A stretch of DNA of 64,000 nucleotides from Entomortierella parvispora E1425 (taxonomy: Eukaryota; Fungi; Mortierellomycota), in assembly GCA_020891255.1 (NCBI GenBank), contig BQFW01000001.1, positions 1,240,001 through 1,304,000 on the forward strand. Direction: 5' to 3'. Made by a program: the position numbers and the translations under genes. Positions 11,375 through 51,313 of the stretch are shown piece after piece (the first letter of the stretch is position 1; each line of letters opens with the position of its first letter). The notes beneath the pieces are model-generated. The model made no database searches, was not told where the DNA came from, and worked only from the letters and a program-made list of their open reading frames with translations.

Positions 11375-14300
11375 ATGGCGCAAGAATCCAAGCAACAAAG
11401 AAAGCGACCTGCTTACGGGATGTCAGACGCTCATGGTCAGCCTTCTGATCAAACACCATTGCCGTTTCCACCTCAAAACAAAAGGGCGAAGAACAGGAAC
11501 CAGCTCGCCGCGGCGACCGATACACTTCCGACGGCTGCTGAGACAAACGACGCGCCTCAGGCACCGAAACATCGCGCTTCAGTTAATAAAGCAGCTTCGG
11601 CTCAGTACCAAGCAGGAAAACTCCCCACAAAGAAGAAAAAGCATGGCGGTTCCTTGACTCACCTGCCTTTGTGCATCAACCACGACATTGAGAATGCTTT
11701 GAGCGAGGAGGAACTCGAACGACGTCGTATCGAATCCGCCAACTTTATCACGGACCAGATCCTGCTGCTTCAGAATCCAGGTGCCACTGTTTTCTGTCAC
11801 CAAGGTAGAATAAGAGACTGGAGGGTAAGTCAGCAGTCTATACATGTGCTTGCTTGCTTGACATGATATGTTTTTTTTTGTGGGGTACCTCCTAAACCGC
11901 AACCGCCTTTCAATCTAGGACTACTGTATCGAGAAGCATGGAGCAGATACAAGAGTAAACGCTGTCAAGGTTATCCAGTATCTCAAAGATGTTATCTTCA
12001 AGGTCACCACTAAGAAGCTCATTGACCCCAAGAGAGGATACGATGGTGTTATTGGAACCTCGACAACAAAAGAACCTGCAGATGGAATGGCACCCCAGCA
12101 GGAACAGCACGCGAATACTGGCACTGGCAACAGTGCCAATCACGATGCTCAAGTGGAGGACAACAATGAAGTCTGGAGTGAAGACGATGGCGCCGAGGAG
12201 GAGGAGGATGATGGGTCAATGATAGCTTATGAAATCGAAAGTCGCCAAGAGAGAGAAGAACTGGAAGAACGGGACACGGAACTCTCACAGGCGCCTCGTC
12301 ACACCTGGGTCTCTGTAGACTACGACTCTGTGGCTGCGCAGTCCAATCTCACCACCCGTGAAAAGCTGGTTGCCAGCGGACAAAAGCAACCGAAAGCTGT
12401 GGTGAAACCTACTTCCCCTCGCTTTCGACCAAATGAGAGGAACCAGAGCTGTACGCCAGCACACATTGACTCTACTGCAGACAAGGCAAAAGGTAAGAAT
12501 TAATTGGATTTTTTTTTGAATGGTATTATACATTGTACTAACCATGAGGCCCCATGTCTTCCACCACAGTCTTCGATGATGCGGAGACTGATAATCATGG
12601 ACGCAGGGTCATTTATGTTCCGAGGACACTGGGCACCATACTCAACATCAAAAAAGCCCTAGTTCACCTTTGGGAAGAACAACGAGGCCAACAGGCACCC
12701 TATCCAAACCGTGTGCCGCATCCAGGATTCGATAAGACAGTGAAGACCATCATCAGCAACTATGGCTTACGGCTTGTTAAGGACTCTTTAAACCCTGACA
12801 CGTCAAGAAGCTCGGCCTGTTCTCTCCGTGACCCATACTCAGAGAGAATGTTTATAGGAATGTTGTCCTATCTTTGGCGCAATTTGCCGATCAAAGCAAA
12901 ATCAACAACGAAACGTTCCTACAGCACTACAAGACGGTACGCTTATCATCGGGAACGTCTCTGTCTTCTGGCTCGACACCATATGCTACTCTGCGATGAG
13001 GATATCCGAGGAGTTACTCTGTCGGATCTGTTTCACATTCAGCGACTCCACAAGGCGCCTGGTTCCAAGATGGCCACCGGGTTGACATTTACGTTGAGCC
13101 GTGGAAAAACGAATCAAGAAGGTGTTCAACTCTGTGGAACGGCTTTTCGTCACAAGGACTATCGGCGGTGCACTGTTGGTGGATTTGCTTTCTACATGCT
13201 GGAGCGCTGGCAGGTGAGAACAACAATTGTACCATTGCAATGTGCGGTGTTTATTGCTAATATTGGGATATTGGGTATTTATTCGATTTTCTCGGACGGG
13301 TGGACTTGTTAGGTCGATCAGGAACCTTTGCCTGACTTCGCAGATCCGGATGAATGGAGCAAGTATACACTCCTTGTGGATGGCTCTTCTCCTGAGGAAA
13401 GAGCGAAAAAAGACAGAAAAACGCCAATCCATCTCCGGACTCAGATCAACTCGACTGCAGCCATCATGAGGACATGCGAGGTTTACTCCAGCAAGGTGAC
13501 ACATGGTGGTAGATATGCTGGTACTTCAGAGGCATACTATCTTGGACTTGAGCGAGAACACATCCGACATCTTGGGCGGTGGGTAATGGGGCAGATGGAG
13601 AACTTCTATGCTCCTGAAAATCCCGTCATCGGAGCATTTTATATGGCGCACTTCAACCATAAGGACAAGCCATACTTTATCGAGAGAGACCTAGTTACTC
13701 CTCCCCTCGATCTGCAACGGCAAATATTCCCATGGATCGAAAAGGTTTTTGATGATCCCAGGATAAAGCAATTGGCGCCGTCATGGATCAAAACCTGCGA
13801 CGAGGAGATGGAAGGCGGTGATGCAAACGCGGCTTCGGAGACAGATGTGTGGTGGAAAATGAACGAGAAGGACGTAGAGGGAAATCGATGTGACCATGTT
13901 AGCAGTGCTTACGAACATGGCTCTGTCGTTGACTTGATAGCGTTTCTCAAGCTGATGGTCCGGATGAGGAGGGTTATTCTTCAAGACTCGGTTATGTTCA
14001 TGGAAGAGCGAGGTCCTGACGGTGTCACTCTCATGAACAGACTTCTCGCATCCGACCAGATGCAGCAGATATTCATCCGGGATGACTTTCTCCAGTTCAA
14101 GAAGGACCTTCTTGATGATATCAAGAGGCAAAAGGAAGAACGCACTCGCATCAACATCGACGAGGAGCTGAACAACACTGCCATTGCAGATGCCGTCAAT
14201 CGCATGAGCAATGAAATATCAGAGTCGCACGCCAGACAAGAACGCTTGTTGAAAGAGATATTGGTATCAATTCAACAATCCCAACATCAACAAGCGGCAT

Positions 14301-15205
14301 TGGAACATCAACAGTGTGTTGCTCTCAGGGACCAGTTTGGAATGTGGCAAAACCTCCACATGCAACTGATGCAACAGGGACATCAAATTCAACTGCAGTT
14401 GAGACAGTTTGAGCAAAAGCAACGTTATCGCATGGACGGCACCCGGCTGGCAGAGAATGTCCCCCTTCCAATACGACACCAACCTGATACTCAAGGGCGT
14501 ATCCAACTGGCAATTCAGCAGCAGGACGACCGGGAGCAAGATCGGCAGCAGTGTCAACAACAGGGTCAGAAGCAGGGTCAGGAACAGGGTCAGCAACAGA
14601 GTCAGCAACTGGATCAACAACAGGGTCAGCTACTGGATCAACAACAGAGTCGGCAACTGGATCAACAACAGAGTCGGCAACTGGATCAACAACAGAGTCA
14701 GGGGCAAGATCAGCAGCAGGGCGAACAACAGAGCCAGGGGCAGGGCCAACAGCAGCAAGAATTCCAACAAGAAGAGGATGATGATGATGATGATGATGAG
14801 CCACTAACAGCATTTGGACGACGGCTGAAGGATGTCCCGCCGGTGCCGCCACAATTCAAGCAACCATGCTGGAAAGTTAGCTACACACTTGTGCCAGACC
14901 GAGGGGCATTGACAGTTAAAAAAGCTTGCTGGGAATTCAATGGCCCAATGGCAGCCTTGAAATTGCGACGACCGTATGATGGGTCAGAAAGCAAAACCGT
15001 TCAGCGCAGGCGTAGGCTCATTCGAGTGATTGAGGCGCATGCTGAAGCCAATGGCCTCTCCTTTGAAGAGGCAAGGGATTCCTTGTCCGTTGCTAATCAG
15101 GGCAAGACTGTGGCTAGTCTTGTCAAACGTTTACAATTGCTGTACCCAGAGATCTTGGGCAATCAAACACACGACAAAAATGACGAGCATGATGAAAATG
15201 GATGA
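11375..15205 (+). mobile_element. Crypton-type (CryptonF/Ndc10-like) tyrosine recombinase gene with C-terminal Gcr1-like domain; about 1193 aa spliced
   Basis: Join 11375-11824, 11919-12492, 12549(or 12570)-13213, 13313-15205 is in frame. Motifs: HHMLLCDEDIRGVTLSDLF, SRGKTNQEG, RHKDYRRCTVGGFAFY, PDF..W, KVTHGGR, HLGRW, MENFY. C-terminal TVKKACWEFNGP..ESKTVQRRRRLIRVI resembles Gcr1_C. Element termini not identified. Confidence 0.88.
14545..14760 (+). repeat. Gln-rich coding tandem repeat (24-nt units such as CAACAACAGAGTCGGCAACTGGAT) in the recombinase linker
   Basis: QQQS(R/Q)QLD-type units seen in both DNA and protein. Confidence 0.9.
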
Positions 15206-17026: not shown

Positions 17027-19989
17027 ATGACCAAACCTCCAAAAGTGAACCAACAACCCTTCAGGATCGCATCCTTTTGCGTTCCTGATGGACAAGTGAA
17101 CCCGGTCCTCAGGATCTCTACCCGTGTTGATCCAGTAACCGGTACTCACTTTATCCTGTGGCGCGAGGTTCAGAGACTCTTTGACGGCACTGCCAAGTAC
17201 GCCCTCAACGACGGCTGCTTGGTTCCCTTCCTGGAAGATGATTCCTTCAATGAGTAAGAAGAGCAACAGCAAGAAAAAAGGGAAATAAGGAGGTTGAATG
17301 ACAATCTAACCTGTTGCTCTGTGATCATAGGCTGGTCCCTCAGCGCATCGCCTATTGCCCAGACGTTGTGTTGAACGTGGTCATAGGCGAGCCTCAGTTA
17401 GAGGCTGACGCTCCAGAAACGACATTGACCACAGTGGCACCCGCAGTGGATGATGACGAAAAGGACGCGGTCGTTTTATCATCCGACGTTGCCGACCTGT
17501 CTATCCAGGAGCCACAATCTCCAACCGCAGATATTGCCACGACTTGTCCTCCTCAAAACAACACCGAGTCACTGGAAGAGGAGCGCTCAGTGCCCCAGGC
17601 CGACAATGCAGTTTTGGATAAGAAAACAATTGTGCAGGAAAGTGTGACCGCTCTCCCTGCAGAGCCTGCGCATGTGGATCAGCAAACCAATGTCGCGCCT
17701 CTTGATCAGAACCAAGCGGTCCTGGGCACACCTTTCCAACTTGACGACTACCCTCTCCCGCGACTGTTTGTGCTACTCCCAACAAAACTGCACTTGGTCC
17801 ATGGCGTCCTCAAGCCCCACTGGCGACACTTTCGACTGTTCTTTTTGTGCGAATATGGCGCGCACACAAATCAGGAAGGATCTGGTCAGATCAACATGGT
17901 TCACTGGGCAAACCACAAGGGCTACGACATCAAGAATCCCGAGAACTTGTTCCCAAAGATCTTTAATCACATCTTGGAGGTCATGAAGGGAATTCAGTGC
18001 GGGAGTACGTTTACTATGGTTCCCCCTGCTACTTCAACGTCGAGTTTGGCAGCAGTGGAACTCCAACGGATCGAAGCAAAAACCACCATGAGCATCCGTG
18101 CCCTAATTGACATGACGGTCGAATACTTTGAGGGCTTCAAGAAATGTCAACCTGAACCTAATCCCGTGTTGCCCCATGACTTTCGCAAGAGGACGCCTCC
18201 GAATGCGGCCATGGGCATGGAGTGCAGGCCCATGGACACCTTTCTCCCTCAAGCCAAGGCTGGACCTCACGGGAATCTTTTCAGGACAGTGACAGAGGAT
18301 GGCGACGTCTATTGGCTTTGCCGAGAGCACTCACCAGAGGTCAAGCACACCAAAATCATCCAGCGACTTACCAAAGTGGTGAAGCTGCATGCCAATTCTT
18401 CTTTTAAAGAAGGAAGAGTGACCATCCAACTCGAAAACGAGACTCAGGCTCGACCGTTCTATGAAATTTTCGCCCAAGCTAAGGATGTGGTCCATGAGCT
18501 GGAAGTCTACTTCAACTACAACCCTACACGCGCCGGCTTTCAGGCTTTGGTGGATGCCGTTCTCAAAGCAAGATTGCTGTCGCTTGTCATCCGACAGAAT
18601 CCTGGAGAGGATGAAGTCATTCGGCGACGATGCGATCCGTTGATGGCACTCTTGGCGACAGGGCGACTCCGATCCGCTCATTTCTACCTATACAACACCA
18701 TCTTTGAGCAGATTGGAAAGTTTTCGGATCTGCCCTCATTCTCGACCGTTCGCCACCTCTCGCTTCGGGGCGGCACCATGGAACAGAACCACAACGCGCT
18801 CGTGCAGACCTTTAGGAAATGCACCTCTCTCCAGTCGTTTCATTGCTGCCTCGTCGATCCCGATCTCGCCCCGGTCATTGGCCGATGCATTGAGGCGTGC
18901 CCGACGTTGGAGAAGTTTGACCTTTTGTGGTACTGCTCGACCCCGGATTCGATCGTCAGTCTCATGGACAAAGCCTTGGCTCTTCTCTCTCGAAAGAGCA
19001 AAAACAGTGACGGAACAGATGTCAAGTACAGTTTCCGGTTGCTCAAAGTGTCAACTACGGACGGCATGTTTGACGTTGAACGATTAGAGGATGGAACAGT
19101 CCTTCTCGACGAGTCCCTGCGCAACCACCAATCCGCACGCTCCATGTTCAGCCGTCATGGATGGGCCTTAAAGTCGCTCACCCTCAAGAGCTACCGCCAG
19201 CATGTACCCCAGTTCAACCTGGGCTGGTGGGTAGAGTCGATCGACCGAAAGGGAGGCCTGTGCAATCTGCAGTCGATGACTCTGGATGGTTCTTTGATTC
19301 GACAGGCCGATCGACAACCGCTCTTACGGATCCTGGAGAGTTCACGAGGGCTCAAGGAGTTATCCCTGACCCTGCCCAATGTCTCTGACGCTGCACAGGT
19401 TGAGAGCATGAGGTGGTGCCTCGTCCACTTGGGCAGCTGGATCTCGACCTTGCATTTGACTAGAAAAGGCAATCGAAACGAGGTCGCTCATCTGTTGACA
19501 CGGGGCGTGCTTCCAAAGCTGAGCGAGCTCCACGTCTTTGCACCAAGGCTGAGAGACGACGACATCTTTTGGCTCACGCGATTGCTGGCGACTGAACCTC
19601 CTGTCGGGGTTCCAGAGGGCATAACACAGGGCTTTAGAGACCTGGGTCTGCGAAAGGCGTTCCTGAACAACATGCATGTTCAGGAAGAGAGCTGGAAAGA
19701 GTTGTTCAAGGCTCTGGACTTTTCGGCTTTGAGACTGTTGAGTATTGAATCTTCGAGGTTTGGGCGAAAGCAATGGGATGACCTCCTGGAGTGTCTCCCA
19801 CAATCGGGTCGATTCAAGGACGAGAAGGGAGGCGCACTACCTGTGCCATTGGAGACTCTTAGCCTTTGTGGGTCACCGCTTGCAACGTCAGATGAGGCCA
19901 AGGACGGGACTCTGCAGGTTGCTTTTGAGGGAAGGGCACCCTTTGCTGAACTGTTTATTCAACCCCAAGCGCGTTATAGGCCATCATAA
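17027..19989 (+). CDS. Mortierellaceae-type expanded-family protein: N-terminal D..G..ILW domain, LFVLLP..FRLFFLCE..H.GY region, C-terminal RNI-like LRRs
   Basis: Exons 17027-17253 and 17331-19989 join as NE-LVPQRIAY. Motifs PLPRLFVLLP, FRLFFLCEYG, NHKGY, NLFRTVTEDGDVYWLCREH, then Leu-rich LxxLxL periodicity. Confidence 0.8.
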
Positions 19990-44035: not shown

Positions 44036-44100
44036 TGTTTCGTGACCGCCGAGTCATCTGTGCACTCCTTGCTCTTTCTCCCCTCTCACCACGCACCATC

Positions 44101-46979
44101 ATGACGGATTATATTTCCACCCTGGTATGCCTTGTGGAGGGAGATGACAGTGAGAAGATCTTTGGACTGAATTCACTCTCACACCCGACGCCGTTTCCCG
44201 AACCGCAAAATATCCTTCAGCTCAAAGGCACCATTTATGCTTTACGGCCGGAGAGGTTTGAGGGCATAAGGCCAGAGGACCTTATTATCTGGAAAGCCTT
44301 CATTCCCTACAAATCGGTCAACAGGAATGAGCCAATCAAGCTAAGCAAAGATGATGTAACAAAGCTTCACTCGATGGACGAACTGTCCAAAGTTCTCCCA
44401 CTGCGGCTACCCAAGAATACAATTCACATCATTGTCCAGCGACCACCGTCAGGTAATTTGCATTTTTGCTCTCTTGCATCAGAAGTCTGTTTCATTGTTC
44501 TAATTGCGGATCCACCGGCATTTATTCTCCTGTTACAGACAGTCATCTTAATCCTCAAGAACGATCCCGTCTGCTTCCCAGTGAGTCCTTCACAACTGAA
44601 TTTAGCCTTCTTAAGATCGTGCATGATCTCATTTCTAATTCCTCTTCTTTTTTTTTTTTGTTAGATTTGGTCGAGGAAGATCTACTTGGGGTCGAAGAAC
44701 GCGAATATCTAGACAAGTTTTGCAAAACTGATGCAGAACCCATCCAAGAATTCTTTCGAGGAAATGCAATCTCTGTTGGTCCCACTGGTGAGCGTCCAAG
44801 CTTTCTTCTCGACAACATCTCATCAACACTTGACCCGAAGGCTTCGTCTCAAGCGCTATGGAGGCGCTTCTTGGAAACAAGGAAGGAACGAGATCGAGCA
44901 CTGGCCATCATTGGAACCTCCGGATGTGGCAAAACACGTACGTGCTTGGAGGTGCTAGGCGCACACTATGGTATATTTTTCACCGCCGTCCAACCTAAGT
45001 CCATGATCGGATCGTCTGACCTTTCGGATGCGGATAAGGAGATCTCGAAACTGCTCAAAGCGGGGGACTATGTGAACAACTGGCGATATGCAGAGATGAT
45101 CGCAGGACGACTCTTGTTCATTCGGTTGGCTGTATTGCGCTATCTGCTTCGGACGGACTCTAACCTCACGCCGAAACGATGGCTGATGTTCCAACTCATG
45201 CAACACCGGTTCTGCAAGGATCTCGGATATCCAACTACCAGCGCACCCAAAGATCTATTTCAGTGCCTAATGCGTAGCTCTGTCAGTCGAGAAGTTACCC
45301 CCGAATCTTTTGACAAGGTTTTGAAGGACATCTATGACTTGATTGCAACGAGGCTTGATGAGGGTCAACCTATAGCCGATGCCATTGGGGTGTTTCCGAT
45401 ATTTCTGGACGAGGCGCAGACATTGCAAGTATCGAGTCCACGTAACTTCCGCTGTCAAGACGACAGGAGAATTCCCCGCTCAGTCTTGTCGCCAATTCTC
45501 GCTGGAATGACCTTGATGAACCAGAAGACGATTTACCGGTCGCTTCTTTGTGTGGGTGTCTCTGGAACTGGACTTGGACTTGTCAATCTTGAATCAGTTG
45601 CTGGATCAGGACTCGCTAAGATGGATGGAAGACCCTGGAGGCCCTTTACGAACTTTGGCTGTTGGAACGGCGAGGATCATATCCGAAAGTTCGTAAAAGA
45701 CAGAGTCGATATGGCGATGGACGATCCAAAGCGACTGCTCGAAAAGTTCAGGGGACGATATCGACCTCTTCTGACCTGTTTGGAGTATTTCTTGATGCAT
45801 CCGGAAAGCACAATGGAGGAGGCCATTGACCAAACCTTCAAACTGTTGACCACTGCTCAGAAAGCTGACGTCCTTCAGGACAGGTCATTTTATCATTTGT
45901 TTGAGAAAGTTGAGAAAATGCAGGAACACCGAAGGATGTATCTCGGAATTGTGATGAATTTCTTTCTCCGGGGCGAATGCTTTCACTTCTCCAACACAGC
46001 CGAGAAATTGTTGGTAGAGACAGGATTTGGCCGCCTAATTTCTGATCCAGACAAGGTGATGGCTTCGACTGTGGATGAGCCTTTTGTGATGGAGGCTGGA
46101 TGGAACTACTACTCCTCGACAAACGCTATTCCGAGTGGACTTCTCCAGCAGATGGTAGTCGCGGATCATGCATGTTCTCAAGGCCTTTTGTTCGAGTATT
46201 TGGTACCAGACATGATGCTCCGACTCTTTGAAGGAAGCGGTGACCTCAATCGGCATGAGGCATTCCGAAGCGTTACACAAACTCCTGGATCTATGGCGTT
46301 GAATGTGAAGGCAAAGGTTCGAATTGGCCCGTTCCGAGTCAGTATTTACAGGGGTTCAGGCAATACCTCAGTCAGTTCATCGGACAGGACATCCGACAGC
46401 ACTTCAGATGTGTCTTCGAATGTCATACTTCCTACTCATCAGACGCTGCTACAATATCTGAGCAACCCGAGCCGCGCAACATTTTACTTCCCATCAAAAA
46501 ATTGTGGGCCAGACTTGATCTTTTTCGTCGAGGTCAAGTTGCATGGTGGCAAGGTGTCAGTTCCGGTTGTCGTTCATGTCAATCTTCAGTCCAATCCCGA
46601 TTGGGAATCTGCGGTGGCGACCACCAACCTGGATAAACTATTCACCACGAAGGATGGAGAGTGGAATGGGTCCGTGGATGACAAAGACATTGAGGCTGTC
46701 AGCCTTTTGAAAAGTATGCGCCCTCATGGATTTTACTTCCGAGTCATTGTCGCATTTCCGGCGAAGCCCAGGGAAGAAACCATTCCGTGCCATGTGCGAA
46801 AAGAGACAAATGGCTTTGGCGGATCTATGGCGATCATTTCACCTGAGAATATCCACCAGTACACGGACGAAAGTGTCGTGCGGGCTCTGAAGGCAATGAA
46901 GGGAGTGATGGACGACAAATGTTCTCACACCGTGAAGAAGGCAAAGACTTCCCACTCGCGCAATACACGGCGTGCGTGA
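44101..46979 (+). CDS. Crinkler-family header-NTPase-PD(D/E)XK nuclease protein, copy 1 (nuclease QxK motif reads HxN); 902 aa
   Basis: Exons 44101-44452, 44539-44580, 44665-46979. Header MTDYISTLVCLVEG..LIIWK..HIIVQRPP; Walker A GTSGCGKT; Walker B IFLDEAQ; C-terminal GLLFEYL..CGPDLIFFV..PVVVHVNL. Confidence 0.88.
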
Positions 46980-47607
46980 GGCAGCCGACTTGTCCGTCTG
47001 TTTAGTTTTTCTGCTGGTTGCTCTGAACTATGTGGTGCCAGTCAACCCTTTCGCTATCTTTTGCTTCACAGAAATGACTCGGTCCGCTCTAATAAAAAAA
47101 ATAAAAATCCGCGCTGCTTTGGCATTCATTTTGTCCTTGAATGAAGCTTGTGAAATACGTATGAACCCACAACCGAAGTTCGGCAGCTTTCTGTCCGTGT
47201 GAAAGAGGGGCAAAAACGGGTGATCATATCCGTTCACCCTTTTCTTTAGTCATTTTTGAAGTCGAGGTCAAAAAAAGTAAAGAAAATCAACTGAAGCGTG
47301 CGCAAATGGCCAAGACGACAAGGGCGACCAAGCGTTGAACCCGCGAGCAGTCGCCTCTTATTTTCTTGAAATTGATTGATCACCTTTCACAGTGTTCATA
47401 TCTTGTAGCGTATGGGTTTCTTTTCCTTGTGAGGGATGATAGCGAGAGGAGCGATAAATGGCATCAGGACATGGAAGATATTCAGCAGGTGCATATACTC
47501 GCTATTTCCATAAAGCCATAAAGAAAGGCTCCCCACAGCTATTCACTCTCTTGATTTCGTCTCGCATTTCCCTCTCGCCACGCATTTCCCTCTTACCACG
47601 CACCATC

Positions 47608-50486
47608 ATGACGGATTATATTTCCACCATGGTATGCCTTGTGGAGGGAGATGACAGTGAGAAGATCTTTGGACTGAATTCACTCTCACACCCGACGCCG
47701 TTTCCCGAACCGCAAAATATCCTTCAGCTCAAAGGCACCATTTATGCTTTACGGCCGGAGAGGTTTGAGGGCATAAGGCCAGAGGACCTTATTATCTGGA
47801 AAGCCTTCATTCCCTACAAATCGGTCAACAGGAATGAGCCAATCAAGCTAAGCAAAGATGATGTAACAAAGCTTCACTCGATGGACGAACTGTCCAAAGT
47901 TCTCCCACTGCGGCTACCCAAGAATACAATTCACATCATTGTCCAGCGACCACCGTCAGGTAATTTGCATTTTTGCTCTCTTGCATCAGAAGTCTGTTTC
48001 ATTGTTCTAATTGCGGATCCACCGGCATTTATTCTCCTGTTACAGACAGTCATCTTAATCCTCAAGAACGATCCCGTCTGCTTCCCAGTGAGTCCTTCAC
48101 AACTGAATTTAGCCTTCTTAAGATCGTGCATGATCTCATTTCTAATTCCTCTTCTTTTTTTTTTTTGTTAGATTTGGTCGAGGAAGATCTACTTGGGGTC
48201 GAAGAACGCGAATATCTAGACAAGTTTTGCAAAACTGATGCAGAACCCATCCAAGAATTCTTTCGAGGAAATGCAATCTCTGTTGGTCCCACTGGTGAGC
48301 GTCCAAGCTTTCTTCTCGACAACATCTCATCAACACTTGACCCGAAGGCTTCGTCTCAAGCGCTATGGAGGCGCTTCTTGGAAACAAGGAAGGAACGAAA
48401 TCGAGTACTGGCCATCATTGGAACCTCCGGATGTGGCAAAACACGTACGTGCTTGGAGGTGCTAGGCGCACACTATGGTATATTTTTCACCGCCGTCCAA
48501 CCTAAGTCCATGATCGGATCGTCTGACCTTTCGGATGCGGATAAGGAGATCTCGAAACTGCTCAAAGCGGGGGACTATGTGAACAACTGGCGATATGCAG
48601 AGATGATCGCAGGACGACTCTTGTTCATTCGGTTGGCTGTATTGCGCTATCTGCTTCGGACGGACTCTAACCTCACGCCGAAACGATGGCTGATGTTCCA
48701 ACTCATGCAACACCGGTTCTGCAAGGATCTCGGATATCCAACTACCAGCTTCCCTGAGGACCTATTTCAGTGCCTAATGCGTAGCTCTGTCAGTCGAGAA
48801 GTTACCCCCGAATCTTTTGACAAGGTTTTGAAGGACATCTATGACCTGATTGCAACGAGGCTCGATGAGGGTCAACCTATAGCCGATGCCATTGGGGTGT
48901 TTCCGATATTTCTGGACGAGGCGCAGATATTGCAGGTGGCGAGTCCAGACAGCTTTCGCTCTCGAAGCAACAAGACAATTCCCCGCTCAGTCTTGTCGCC
49001 AATTCTCGCCGGAATGACCTTGATGAAACAGAAGACGATTTACCGGTCGCTTCTTTGTGTGGGTGTCTCTGGAACTGGACTTGGACTTGTCAATCTTGAA
49101 TCAGTTGCTGGATCAGGACTCGCTAAGATGGATGGAAGACCCTGGAGGCCCTTTACGAACTTTGGCTGTTGGAACGGCGAGGATCATATCCGAAAGTTCG
49201 TAAAAGACAGAGTCGATATGGCGATGGACGATCCAAAGCGACTGCTCGAAAAGTTCAGGGGACGATATCGACCTCTTCTGACCTGTTTGGAGTATTTCTT
49301 GATGCATCCGGAAAGCACAATGGAGGAGGCCATTGACCAAACCTTCAAACTGTTGACCACTGCTCAGAAAGCTGACGTCCTTCAGGACAGGTCATTTTAT
49401 CATTTGTTTGAGAAAGTTGAGAAAATGCAGGAACACCGAAGGATGTATCTCGGAATTGTGATGAATTTCTTTCTCCGGGGCGAATGCTTTCACTTCTCCA
49501 ACACAGCCGAGAAATTGTTGGTAGAGACAGGATTTGGCCGCCTAATTTCTGATCCAGACAAGGTGATGGCTTCGACTGTGGATGAGCCTTTTGTGATGGA
49601 GGCTGGATGGAACTACTACTCCTCGACAAACGCTATTCCGAGTGGACTTCTCCAGCAGATGGTAGTCGCGGATCATGCATGTTCTCAAGGCCTTTTGTTC
49701 GAGTATTTGGTACCAGACATGATGCTCCGACTCTTTGAAGGAAGCGGTGACCTCAATCGGCATGAGGCATTCCGAAGCGTTACACAAACTCCTGGATCTA
49801 TGGCGTTGAATGTGAAGGCAAAGGTTCGAATTGGCCCGTTCCGAGTCAGTATTTACAGGGGTTCAGGCAATACCTCAGTCAGTTCATCGGACAGGACATC
49901 CGACAGCACTTCAGATGTGTCTTCGAATGTCATACTTCCTACTCATCAGACGCTGCTACAATATCTGAGCAACCCGAGCCGCGCAACATTTTACTTCCCA
50001 TCAAAAAATTGTGGGCCAGACTTGATCTTTTTCGTCGAGGTCAAGTTGCATGGTGGCAAGGTGTCAGTTCCGGTCCTCGTTCAAGTGAAATATCAGCGCA
50101 ACCCCGATTGGGGACATACGGTGGCGACCACCAACCTGGATAAACTATTCACCACGAAGGATGGAGAGTGGAATGGGTCCGTGGATGACAAAGACATTGA
50201 GGCTGTCAGCCTTTTGAAAAGTATGCGCCCTCATGGATTTTACTTCCGAGTCATTGTCGCATTTCCGGCGAAGCCCAGGGAAGAAACCATTCCGTGCCAT
50301 GTGCGAAAAGAGACAAATGGCTTTGGCGGATCTATGGCGATCATTTCACATGGGAATATCCACCAGTACACGGACGAAAGTGTCGTGCGGGCTCTGAAGG
50401 CAATGAAGGGAGTGATGGACGACAAATGTTCTCACACCGTGAAGAAGGCAAAGACTTCCCACTCGCGCAATACACGGCGTGCGTGA
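47608..50486 (+). CDS. Crinkler-family header-NTPase-PD(D/E)XK nuclease protein, copy 2 (intact PD..QxK); 902 aa
   Basis: Exons 47608-47959, 48046-48087, 48172-50486; same motifs as copy 1 but CGPDLIFFV..PVLVQVKY. Confidence 0.88.
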
Positions 50487-51313
50487 GGCAGCCGACTTGT
50501 CCGTCTGTTTAGTTTTTCTGCTGGTTGCTCTGAACTATGTGGTGCCAGTCAACCCTTTCGCTATCTTCTGCTTCACAGAAATGACTCGGTCCGCTCTAAT
50601 AAAAAAAATAAAAATCCACGCTGCTTTGGCATTCATTTGTCCAAGAATGCGACTTGTGAGGCGGGTTACGAGGGCTTTTTTGGAACCAATCTCTCATTGT
50701 TGCACTTGAGGATAAAGGTATCAGAGACAGACGATCTGATTTGAATGCTTTTACATCAGTACTGTTCACTGTGCATGCCACTCCCACTCCCCCTCCTAAT
50801 TTGTCTCTGTAAAAACCGTCTGTTCCATTATCGCTGCAGCCATGTCATGGCTTTACAAGTACAAGATGGGAGGTTAGGTCTTCATACAGAATGAGGCGAA
50901 CTGAACGTGAGCTCACTGGCAACTGCAGCGAGGAAACCATATCATCAGCCTTCAGGGATGTCCAGTGAGAAGCCGGATTGAACTCATGATCTTCGCACAT
51001 TCCTACCATGGCTGTGCTTCTTTCAAATAAATGACCGCTGTGATCGACTGCATCCACTTTATCGTGTGCCGAACATAATACCTGACGTACTTTGGTTCCT
51101 AAAAAAAAAGAAGGCAAGGCACCATCAGTGTTATCGATCATTGCTGGGGTCCGGCTGGCCCGTGTATCTCCTAGATAATCCTTCCACAACAAACCCAACA
51201 ATACATGTATGCTTGGCACCATTGTCGTGTGTTTTCGAAGGACTAGTTCAAATGGTCTTTTCCCTTTTTTTTTAATCATTACAATGCTATTATAGAATAT
51301 TCTGTGGTAACTT

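Follow-up and report, generated by a model that had tools for sequence, protein, structure and literature searches.

A tandem pair of Crinkler-type NTPase-nuclease genes in Entomortierella parvispora, nearly identical outside five short islands and probably including one nuclease-dead copy

Oomycetes, and many non-pathogenic fungi as well, are rich in Crinkler proteins that associate a nucleoside triphosphatase (NTPase) with a nuclease. We describe here a tandem pair of genes of this type, EMPS_00344 (copy 1) and EMPS_00345 (copy 2), carried by a 64,000-nt genomic stretch from Entomortierella parvispora E1425 (C1:1,240,001-1,304,000, hereafter called the window, from an assembly of 38.9 Mb in 20 contigs). 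That assembly of a soil saprotroph was built from Nanopore reads at 409x coverage and polished by Pilon with Illumina reads, and RNA-seq data were deposited with it (PMC8759367). The second gene is offset by 3507 nt from the first, and the translations of the three-exon model of both copies are identical to the deposited proteins P0003 and P0001, which align without a gap and have the same residue at 876 of 902 positions (97% identity). The layout of the locus, in window coordinates, is as follows.

44101..46979, plus strand: copy 1 gene, EMPS_00344 (protein P0003, 902 aa), with exons 44101-44452, 44539-44580 and 44665-46979
47608..50486, plus strand: copy 2 gene, EMPS_00345 (protein P0001, 902 aa), with exons 47608-47959, 48046-48087 and 48172-50486
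44081..47131, plus strand: copy 1 homology block, as delimited by the ungapped identity profile (20 nt of 5' untranslated region (UTR), coding sequence (CDS), both introns and 152 nt of 3' UTR)
47588..50638, plus strand: copy 2 homology block, from the same profile
47132..47587, no strand: unique spacer of 456 nt, made of the copy 1 3' flank and of the copy 2 promoter and 5' UTR

When the two copies were compared without gaps at the 3507-nt offset, identity was 98-100% inside the blocks and about 25%, i.e. the random level, outside. From 20 nt upstream of the ATG, the homology extends to 152 nt past the stop codon, just beyond an AATAAA-like run, and a blastn comparison of the flanks and the spacer with one another revealed nothing beyond chance. 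A recent tandem duplication would have copied the flanks too, yet flanks and spacer are unrelated; this argues for an old pair of which only the transcribed region was homogenised.

The earlier note on this DNA, made from the sequence alone, had left room for the two copies being mis-assembled haplotypes. For two sequencing runs made from the source sample, the contigs were aligned to 44850-50400. An Illumina DNA contig of 544 nt matched 47081-47624 without mismatch and thus leads from the 3' end of copy 1 through the spacer and into copy 2 at its 5' end. In the shared gene body, contig depth was 137-156, against 72-84 for the single-copy flanks. Because of this twofold depth and of the bridging contig, we concluded that there are two copies per genome, not two haplotypes of a single gene. 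The run X2, listed as 'DNA?', gave a contig lacking both introns (with GT..AG ends) and bearing an adapter remnant at its 5' end; this identifies X2 as the RNA-seq library that belongs to the genome paper. Its spliced contig (window 47560-48919) begins at 47560, within the copy 2-specific 5' UTR, and displays copy-1 variants further on, so that the copy 2 transcript starts at or upstream of 47560. The RNA contigs stop exactly at positions 48977, 50074 and 46612, which are edges of the islands of divergence described below, and both island variants are therefore present in the RNA. Both genes are transcribed and spliced as annotated, from separate promoters.

The 3051-nt block contains 49 nucleotide differences and no indel. 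Forty-six differences are in the CDS and three in the UTRs; the two introns have none. There are 33 transitions and 16 transversions. All those of the CDS preserve the reading frame; they hit 37 codons, with an amino-acid change in 26 of them and a synonymous change only in the other 11. As listed below, most fall within five islands (changes are written from copy 1 to copy 2).

44892..44899 (copy 2, 48399-48406), plus strand: island 1, with D208N and A210V, where the strand preceding Walker A begins; the copy-2 residue is the commoner one among relatives
45243..45254 (copy 2, 48750-48761), plus strand: island 2, in which 7 of 12 nt differ (A325F, K327E); a loop of variable length among relatives
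45421..45469 (copy 2, 48928-48976), plus strand: island 3, with 17 differences in 49 nt and 10 amino-acid changes; the loop directly after Walker B, with C395 in copy 1 and S395 in copy 2
46568..46611 (copy 2, 50075-50118), plus strand: island 4, with 14 differences in 44 nt; the putative catalytic strand and the next loop
46575-46583 in copy 1 and 50082-50090 in copy 2, plus strand: H769-V-N771 and Q769-V-K771, respectively, within island 4
46843..46846 (copy 2, 50350-50353), plus strand: island 5, with P858H and E859G; a position variable among relatives

The clustering of the differences is far beyond chance. The densest 50-nt window holds 16 of them, when 5000 random placements of 49 differences gave a mean of 4.1 and a maximum of 9. 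The longest run free of differences, which adjoins island 4, measures 1046-1047 nt, and the maximum in the random placements was 675 nt; on its opposite side, island 4 is bordered by 231 nt without difference. Island 3 has a halo of four lone differences within 85 nt. The earlier note had already spotted the islands, and every one is present at the coordinates that it gave, as are the eight amino-acid changes, the three synonymous-only codons and the 14 nt differences it had counted in island 4; it had omitted what lies outside them, namely L8M, N417K and a few lone synonymous changes. By the Nei-Gojobori method, the 42 island codons (delimited after inspection of the data) have a synonymous divergence (dS) of 0.53 and a non-synonymous divergence (dN) of 0.40, versus 0.005 and 0.001 for the remaining 860 codons; the dS ratio is thus about 100-fold, and dN/dS in the islands is ~0.75. 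Islands 2 and 3 and the second half of island 4 correspond to loops that differ from one family member to another, in length as well as in sequence.

Both proteins begin with a Crinkler header followed by an NTPase, for which an alignment (A2) was made with nine relatives and the in-genome paralogues.

44119..44439 (copy 2, 47626-47946), plus strand: Crinkler N-terminal (ubiquitin-like) header, residues 7-113; PF20147, E 3.2e-10, 41.1 bits (gathering cut-off 24.6)
44913..44936 (copy 2, 48420-48443), plus strand: Walker A, GTSGCGKT (aa 215-222), unaltered in either copy; A2 shows no variation at G, K, T and R
45396..45413 (copy 2, 48903-48920), plus strand: Walker B strand, ending with D380-E381, intact in both copies; D, E and Q are invariant in A2; strand 251-256 of the NTPase model

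The P-loop NTPase spans residues ~125-590, with GxxGxGKT and hhhhDE (..FLDE) invariant in A2. It scored below threshold against the curated Pfam models (AAA_22, 16.9 bits for a cut-off of 27; Rad17, 16 for a cut-off of 23.8), and its profile found nothing significant among the Protein Data Bank (PDB) sequences. Its AlphaFold2 (AF2) model, with a predicted local distance difference test score (pLDDT) of 63, gave as top Foldseek match the archaeal Walker-type ATPase 2qen (E 1.2e-4), followed by the AAA+ proteins SSO1545, HslU, McrB and ORC; as modelled, the domain is AAA+-like. Residue 395, in the F-x-S motif found just after Walker B and close to the nucleotide site, is a serine in 12 of 13 relatives, as in copy 2, and a cysteine in copy 1.

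The C-terminal part of the proteins (residues 590-902) matched no Pfam family when the domain and its 24 relatives were scanned, and its profile found nothing significant among the PDB sequences. An exhaustive HMMER scan of 1.84 billion representative proteins brought out no more than 22 other relatives at E <=1e-3; the ones whose origin was looked up belong to Rhizophagus, Gigaspora, Calcarisporiella, Rhizophlyctis and Syncephalis or to metagenomes. Three positions stand out in this family: an aspartate, and the glutamine and lysine of a Q-x-K motif. The first is part of the following feature.

46509..46514 (copy 2, 50016-50021), plus strand: P747-D748, identical in both copies; GPD is invariant in 24 sequences and lies directly before strand 160-168 of the model

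The glutamine (Q769, or Q180 of the domain) is found in 22 of 22 relatives and the lysine (K771, or K182 of the domain) in 21 of 22. Among 73 further distant relatives retrieved by a profile search, 53 had D/Q/K, nine had D/Q/R, a few showed other single changes and none had HxN; nine other paralogues from the genome retain QxK or QxR. In the AF2 model of the domain (pLDDT 66, predicted template modelling score 0.68), P-D immediately precedes one strand and QxK lies at the end of the following one, as in restriction endonucleases. An exhaustive structural search with this model placed the MspJI nuclease domain first (Z 6.3 over 137 residues, for a safe mark of 8 set by the tool), then BspD6I, PaqCI, AspBHI (Z 5.3), HamA, FokI, Can2, NgoMIV and McrC, and nearly all of the top 50 matches were PD-(D/E)xK nucleases. 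With Foldseek the best E-value was 4e-3 and Mus81 was among the weak fold matches; the structural rows from the ESM Atlas include PDDEXK_4 and Mrr_cat. In MspJI, the equivalent residues are D334 and Q355, the latter from a (Q/E)AK motif, and the D334A and Q355A mutants are inactive (PMC2938202). The D-to-Q spacing is of 21 residues in both cases (D748-Q769 and D334-Q355). Because of family conservation, of the placement of the motif on the strand, of the MspJI match and of this identical spacing, the assignment of QxK as the nuclease active site is well supported, even if the structural scores, taken singly, are modest. The architecture proposed in the earlier note (Crinkler header, Walker A/B NTPase, restriction-endonuclease-fold domain) and its placement of Q769-x-K771 on the catalytic strand were both supported.

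The two copies differ precisely at that motif. Copy 2 matches all the family-invariant columns (D748, Q769, K771); copy 1 keeps D748, and has H769 and N771 in place of Q and K, a combination seen in no other member of the family. The contrast between the family QxK of copy 2 and the HxN of copy 1, which the earlier note had drawn without relatives at hand, thus holds against 22 of them. From these residues we infer that copy 2 is a catalytically competent, NTPase-coupled nuclease of the CR type, and that copy 1, full-length and expressed, is probably nuclease-dead. At the conserved positions, copy 2 has the consensus residue (N208, S395, Q769 and K771) and copy 1 the deviant one (D208, C395, H769 and N771). 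The reverse was found at non-catalytic sites of island 4, where copy 1 carries the consensus L772 (13 of 22 relatives) and A781 (15 of 22) and copy 2 has Y and T. Neither version of the islands is simply a degraded form of the other: judged by their residues, both look like genuine family sequences that were separated long ago.

A lysine/arginine variation of the motif was encountered elsewhere in the genome. Two neighbouring paralogues, L006 (C1:269977-273927) and L011 (C1:262023-265994), are ~8 kb apart and 92.5% identical; one has Q-L-K and the other Q-L-R. QxR is also present in ~1/8 of the distant family members.

A relative of the copy 1 version of island 4 was found at one other place. 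A single-copy contig of 9.5 kb matched 46577-46609 with four mismatches and maps to C1:1521757. This locus, L028 (C1:1519000-1524000, minus strand; relic at ~1521494-1521882), lies 234 kb away and is a decayed paralogue, stop-ridden and internally deleted, in which the header exon's end, together with the first part of intron 1, is joined through a 4-nt overlap to the nuclease domain's second half (the region of the catalytic strand), with further deletions. Across island 4 it shares with copy 1 29 of 33 nt and 12 of the 14 variable sites, and elsewhere it is 67-71% identical to both copies; it encodes P-V-N-L-Q-S-N-P-D. Since the copy-1 haplotype is shared with L028, both that haplotype and the K-to-N state predate the near-identity which the two genes now show.

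Searches for other possible sources of island sequences were negative. Whole-gene DNA searches of the genome detected no third near-identical locus. Searches with 80-nt segments around islands 3 and 4 did not either, but they also missed the known L028 match and so exclude only long, near-identical donors. Exhaustive genome scans with 26-nt cores, allowing up to three mismatches, found for island 3 of both copies and island 4 of copy 2 nothing but their own locus. When every island was compared by blastn-short with the window and 13 paralogue loci, matches were at chance level only, save for L028 with island 4 of copy 1.

We think it fairly probable that EMPS_00344 and EMPS_00345 are an old Crinkler/CR tandem pair subjected to conversion, with unconverted relic islands, a live copy 2 and a probably dead copy 1. 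The transcribed regions of an old pair would have been homogenised recently by interlocus gene conversion. Five short segments would have escaped it and kept the old divergence, ~30% per nucleotide, silent sites included. Island 4 of copy 1 would be what is left of an older 'xVN' lineage, mostly overwritten by sequence of the copy-2 lineage. Gene conversion, already invoked in the earlier note, best explains the near-identity of the copies, given a homology that is limited to the transcription unit and the contrast in dS between the islands and the remaining codons. As to how the mosaic arose, the main rival is a recent duplication followed by several micro-conversions of 12-50 nt from diverged paralogues or pseudogenes, with an L028-like donor for island 4 of copy 1. 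Such events have precedents in chicken immunoglobulin genes and in CYP21. The sharp edges of the islands, the existence of a relative of the copy-1 island 4 haplotype in a pseudogene fragment and the silent divergence inside the islands, which implies templates and not mutation in place, would all agree with it. We nevertheless hold it to be unlikely: the unrelated flanks and spacer indicate that the duplication is not recent, the only relative found is 88% identical and not identical, the 26-nt scans detected no other locus for island 3 of either copy or for island 4 of copy 2, and exchange with donors only ~70% identical is expected to be very inefficient.

Mutation in place, be it local hypermutation or strong positive selection after a recent duplication, could account for many amino-acid changes being packed in short stretches; it is highly improbable. 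Selection on new point mutations was ruled out because the islands are diverged at silent sites, as much as at replacement sites, and mutation of the type of repeat-induced point mutation (RIP) was ruled out by the 33:16 mix of transitions and transversions. Moreover, the island 4 haplotype pre-exists at L028, and no local direct or inverted template was found. An artefact, whereby two haplotypes or nuclei would have been assembled as a tandem or polishing would have generated errors, might be suspected in an assembly that is Nanopore-based and Pilon-polished and in which short-read contigs cannot phase the islands. It is hardly credible in view of the mismatch-free Illumina contig that bridges copy 1, spacer and copy 2, of a gene-body depth twice that of the flanks (and not an equal depth with variants at half depth), and of the total lack of indels in 3051 nt where every change preserves the frame.

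Several points weigh against a converted pair with one dead member. The islands are very sharp (12-50 nt, with ~1 kb free of differences beside island 4), narrower than simple tract models would predict if typical conversion tracts measure hundreds of nucleotides. The 29/33 match of L028 lies on a conserved strand and involves few sites (binomial p of about 0.01). No close orthologue, which would give a direct test of concerted evolution, was found, the 22 relatives being <=41% identical over most of the domain. The assignment of each island variant to one copy, i.e. their phase, depends on the published Nanopore assembly, short-read contigs picking branches arbitrarily. As to the nuclease, the structural matches are modest (Z <=6.3 with a model of pLDDT 66), and HxN is no proof of inactivity since BamHI (ExE) and BglII (ExQ) are active without the lysine.

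The earlier note had gone further and proposed that conversion spares the islands because function must differ there. This is unsupported: three of the five are in loops that are variable family-wide, and could simply be the most diverged segments, those which resist conversion. Whether the islands are held apart by selection or by mechanical resistance to heteroduplex formation (at ~30% mismatch) is, in our judgement, an evenly balanced matter.

The same note suggested that the pair could be an active toxin, copy 2, with a catalytically dead partner, copy 1, serving as antidote or decoy or as a self/non-self switch; a dominant-negative subunit is a further possible role, and in all cases selection would keep the islands apart. 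Several facts are in line with it. Copy 1 deviates at three otherwise conserved residues (C395, H769 and N771) and is yet an open, spliced and transcribed frame of 902 aa with its own promoter; the 'xVN' state is old; and a second near-identical NTPase-nuclease pair exists in the genome, with one copy broken between PD and QxK. Heterodimers of an active and a dead nuclease are also an established design: in Mus81-Eme1 and XPF-ERCC1, a catalytic restriction-fold subunit is associated with a paralogue devoid of the catalytic residues. Those are anciently diverged, whereas the present pair, whose association is hypothetical, is 97% identical. On the other side, toxicity, binding and rescue have to be assumed, the island dN/dS of ~0.75 is compatible with relaxed constraint, three islands are in variable loops, and conversion from copy 2 would keep a dead copy's frame open even in the absence of selection. 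A complex prediction for the two C-terminal domains scored 0.01, which is evidence neither way. We regard a toxin and partner as a rather doubtful reading of the pair. A neutral one, in which copy 1 is a dead duplicate whose frame is kept open by conversion from its live neighbour, also fits, and the island dN/dS agrees with it.

In its most elaborate form, the functional reading would be that of a two-component conflict module. Copy 2 would be an NTPase-gated, DNA-cutting toxin; its dead twin, copy 1, would co-assemble with it and tame, redirect (e.g. towards nicking) or neutralise it; and five islands governing specificity or catalysis would be held apart against continual conversion. This is speculative and we would not count on it. 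If true, the pairing of a live and a dead nuclease would be a recurrent Crinkler design in an early-diverging fungus, comparable to killer/resistance systems such as Spok.

The second pair mentioned above, also Crinkler-type, is formed by L003 (C1:500270-504670; paralogue at 501,770-503,170) and L004 (C1:519509-523909; paralogue at 521,009-522,409), both on the minus strand. A distance of 19 kb separates them, and over 3.3 kb they are 99% identical. Of their nine amino-acid differences, eight are clustered after Walker B. L004 has an A/T run, located between the codons for GPD and those for QxK, that is longer by one base, and its frame is consequently of 635 aa instead of 773; this frameshift may be a real disabling change or a homopolymer assembly error. 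Live/dead nuclease pairing seems, then, to recur in this genome.

How does the pair compare with known systems? In the summary of Zhang et al. 2016 given in PMC5289972, the combination of NTPase and restriction endonuclease (REase) makes up over 1/4 of the CR C-termini, and the REase is believed to be the toxic part, with the NTPase as its regulator. The genes described here have the same three elements as those Crinkler/CR effectors: a PF20147 header, a Walker A/B NTPase and a C-terminal domain of restriction-endonuclease fold. They differ in coming from a saprotrophic Mortierellomycete, with a protein that has the header right at its start and shows nothing suggestive of secretion, and for which a host is not known; in forming a converted tandem pair, as we read it, in which one copy is without the catalytic Q and K; and in having a C-terminal domain without Pfam model. 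The modification-dependent enzymes of the MspJI/AspBHI/Mrr type share the arrangement D, 20 residues, Q-x-K, as well as the fold (Z of 6.3 for MspJI and 5.3 for AspBHI). Unlike our pair, they are bacterial, have an N-terminal SRA-like reader and no NTPase, and sequence similarity to them is undetectable by profile comparison with the PDB sequences. McrBC also couples an NTPase motor or switch to a restriction-fold nuclease, and both McrB and McrC were among the fold matches; it consists, however, of two polypeptides and hydrolyses GTP, whereas here a single chain stands behind a Crinkler header, which makes the likeness a functional analogy only. For the pattern of divergence, a parallel is offered by the GOT1 paralogues of Tigriopus, which are homogenised by conversion except for persisting islands that may mark selected differences (PMC3728101); the islands of the E. 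parvispora pair differ in being very short and sharp, and in that one of them replaces what appear to be the catalytic residues of an enzyme. Thus, the genes belong to the known CR NTPase-REase class, and what is new is the twin itself, putatively live/dead and converted, with its sharp relic islands.

Its value is that of a natural, nearly perfect controlled comparison: two expressed proteins differ by 26 of 902 residues, mostly in five islands, one of which removes the presumed catalytic Q and K. With it, three questions become testable, namely whether the restriction-fold domain is the active, toxic part, whether a dead twin modulates a live one, and which of the short loops beside the nucleotide pocket carry specificity. 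It would also be an unusually sharp case of conversion and old divergence combining to yield paralogues of mosaic structure. Should copy 1 be no more than a decaying duplicate that conversion keeps open, there is nothing out of the ordinary in it.

Two runs from other samples with the same species label, X3 and X5, contained no contig with at least 85% likeness over the pair and only header-like pieces of 33-69 nt; such a lack of contigs does not prove that the pair is missing there. The gene pair may be strain-specific or fast-evolving.

The header has an exon of its own and appears to have been shuffled onto other C-termini in the neighbourhood. At L027 (C1:1468000-1477999, minus strand), a Crinkler header 62% identical to that of the pair (PF20147, E 2e-9) lies upstream of an 805-aa open frame that is unrelated and matches no Pfam family, and in its vicinity are another header and a small piece left over from the C-terminal end of the family studied here. 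The shuffling seems to take place at the intron that comes after '...IHIIVQRPPS'.

Within the window, 13328-15205 (plus strand) is a 625-aa open frame with an NDC10_II domain (E 8e-12), a domain frequent in proteins related to mobile elements, and 17314-19989 (plus strand) is an 891-aa open frame with no Pfam match. The remaining genes of the window encode a chitin synthase and TMEM62-like, HAD/SAK, Kelch-BTB and UBX proteins.

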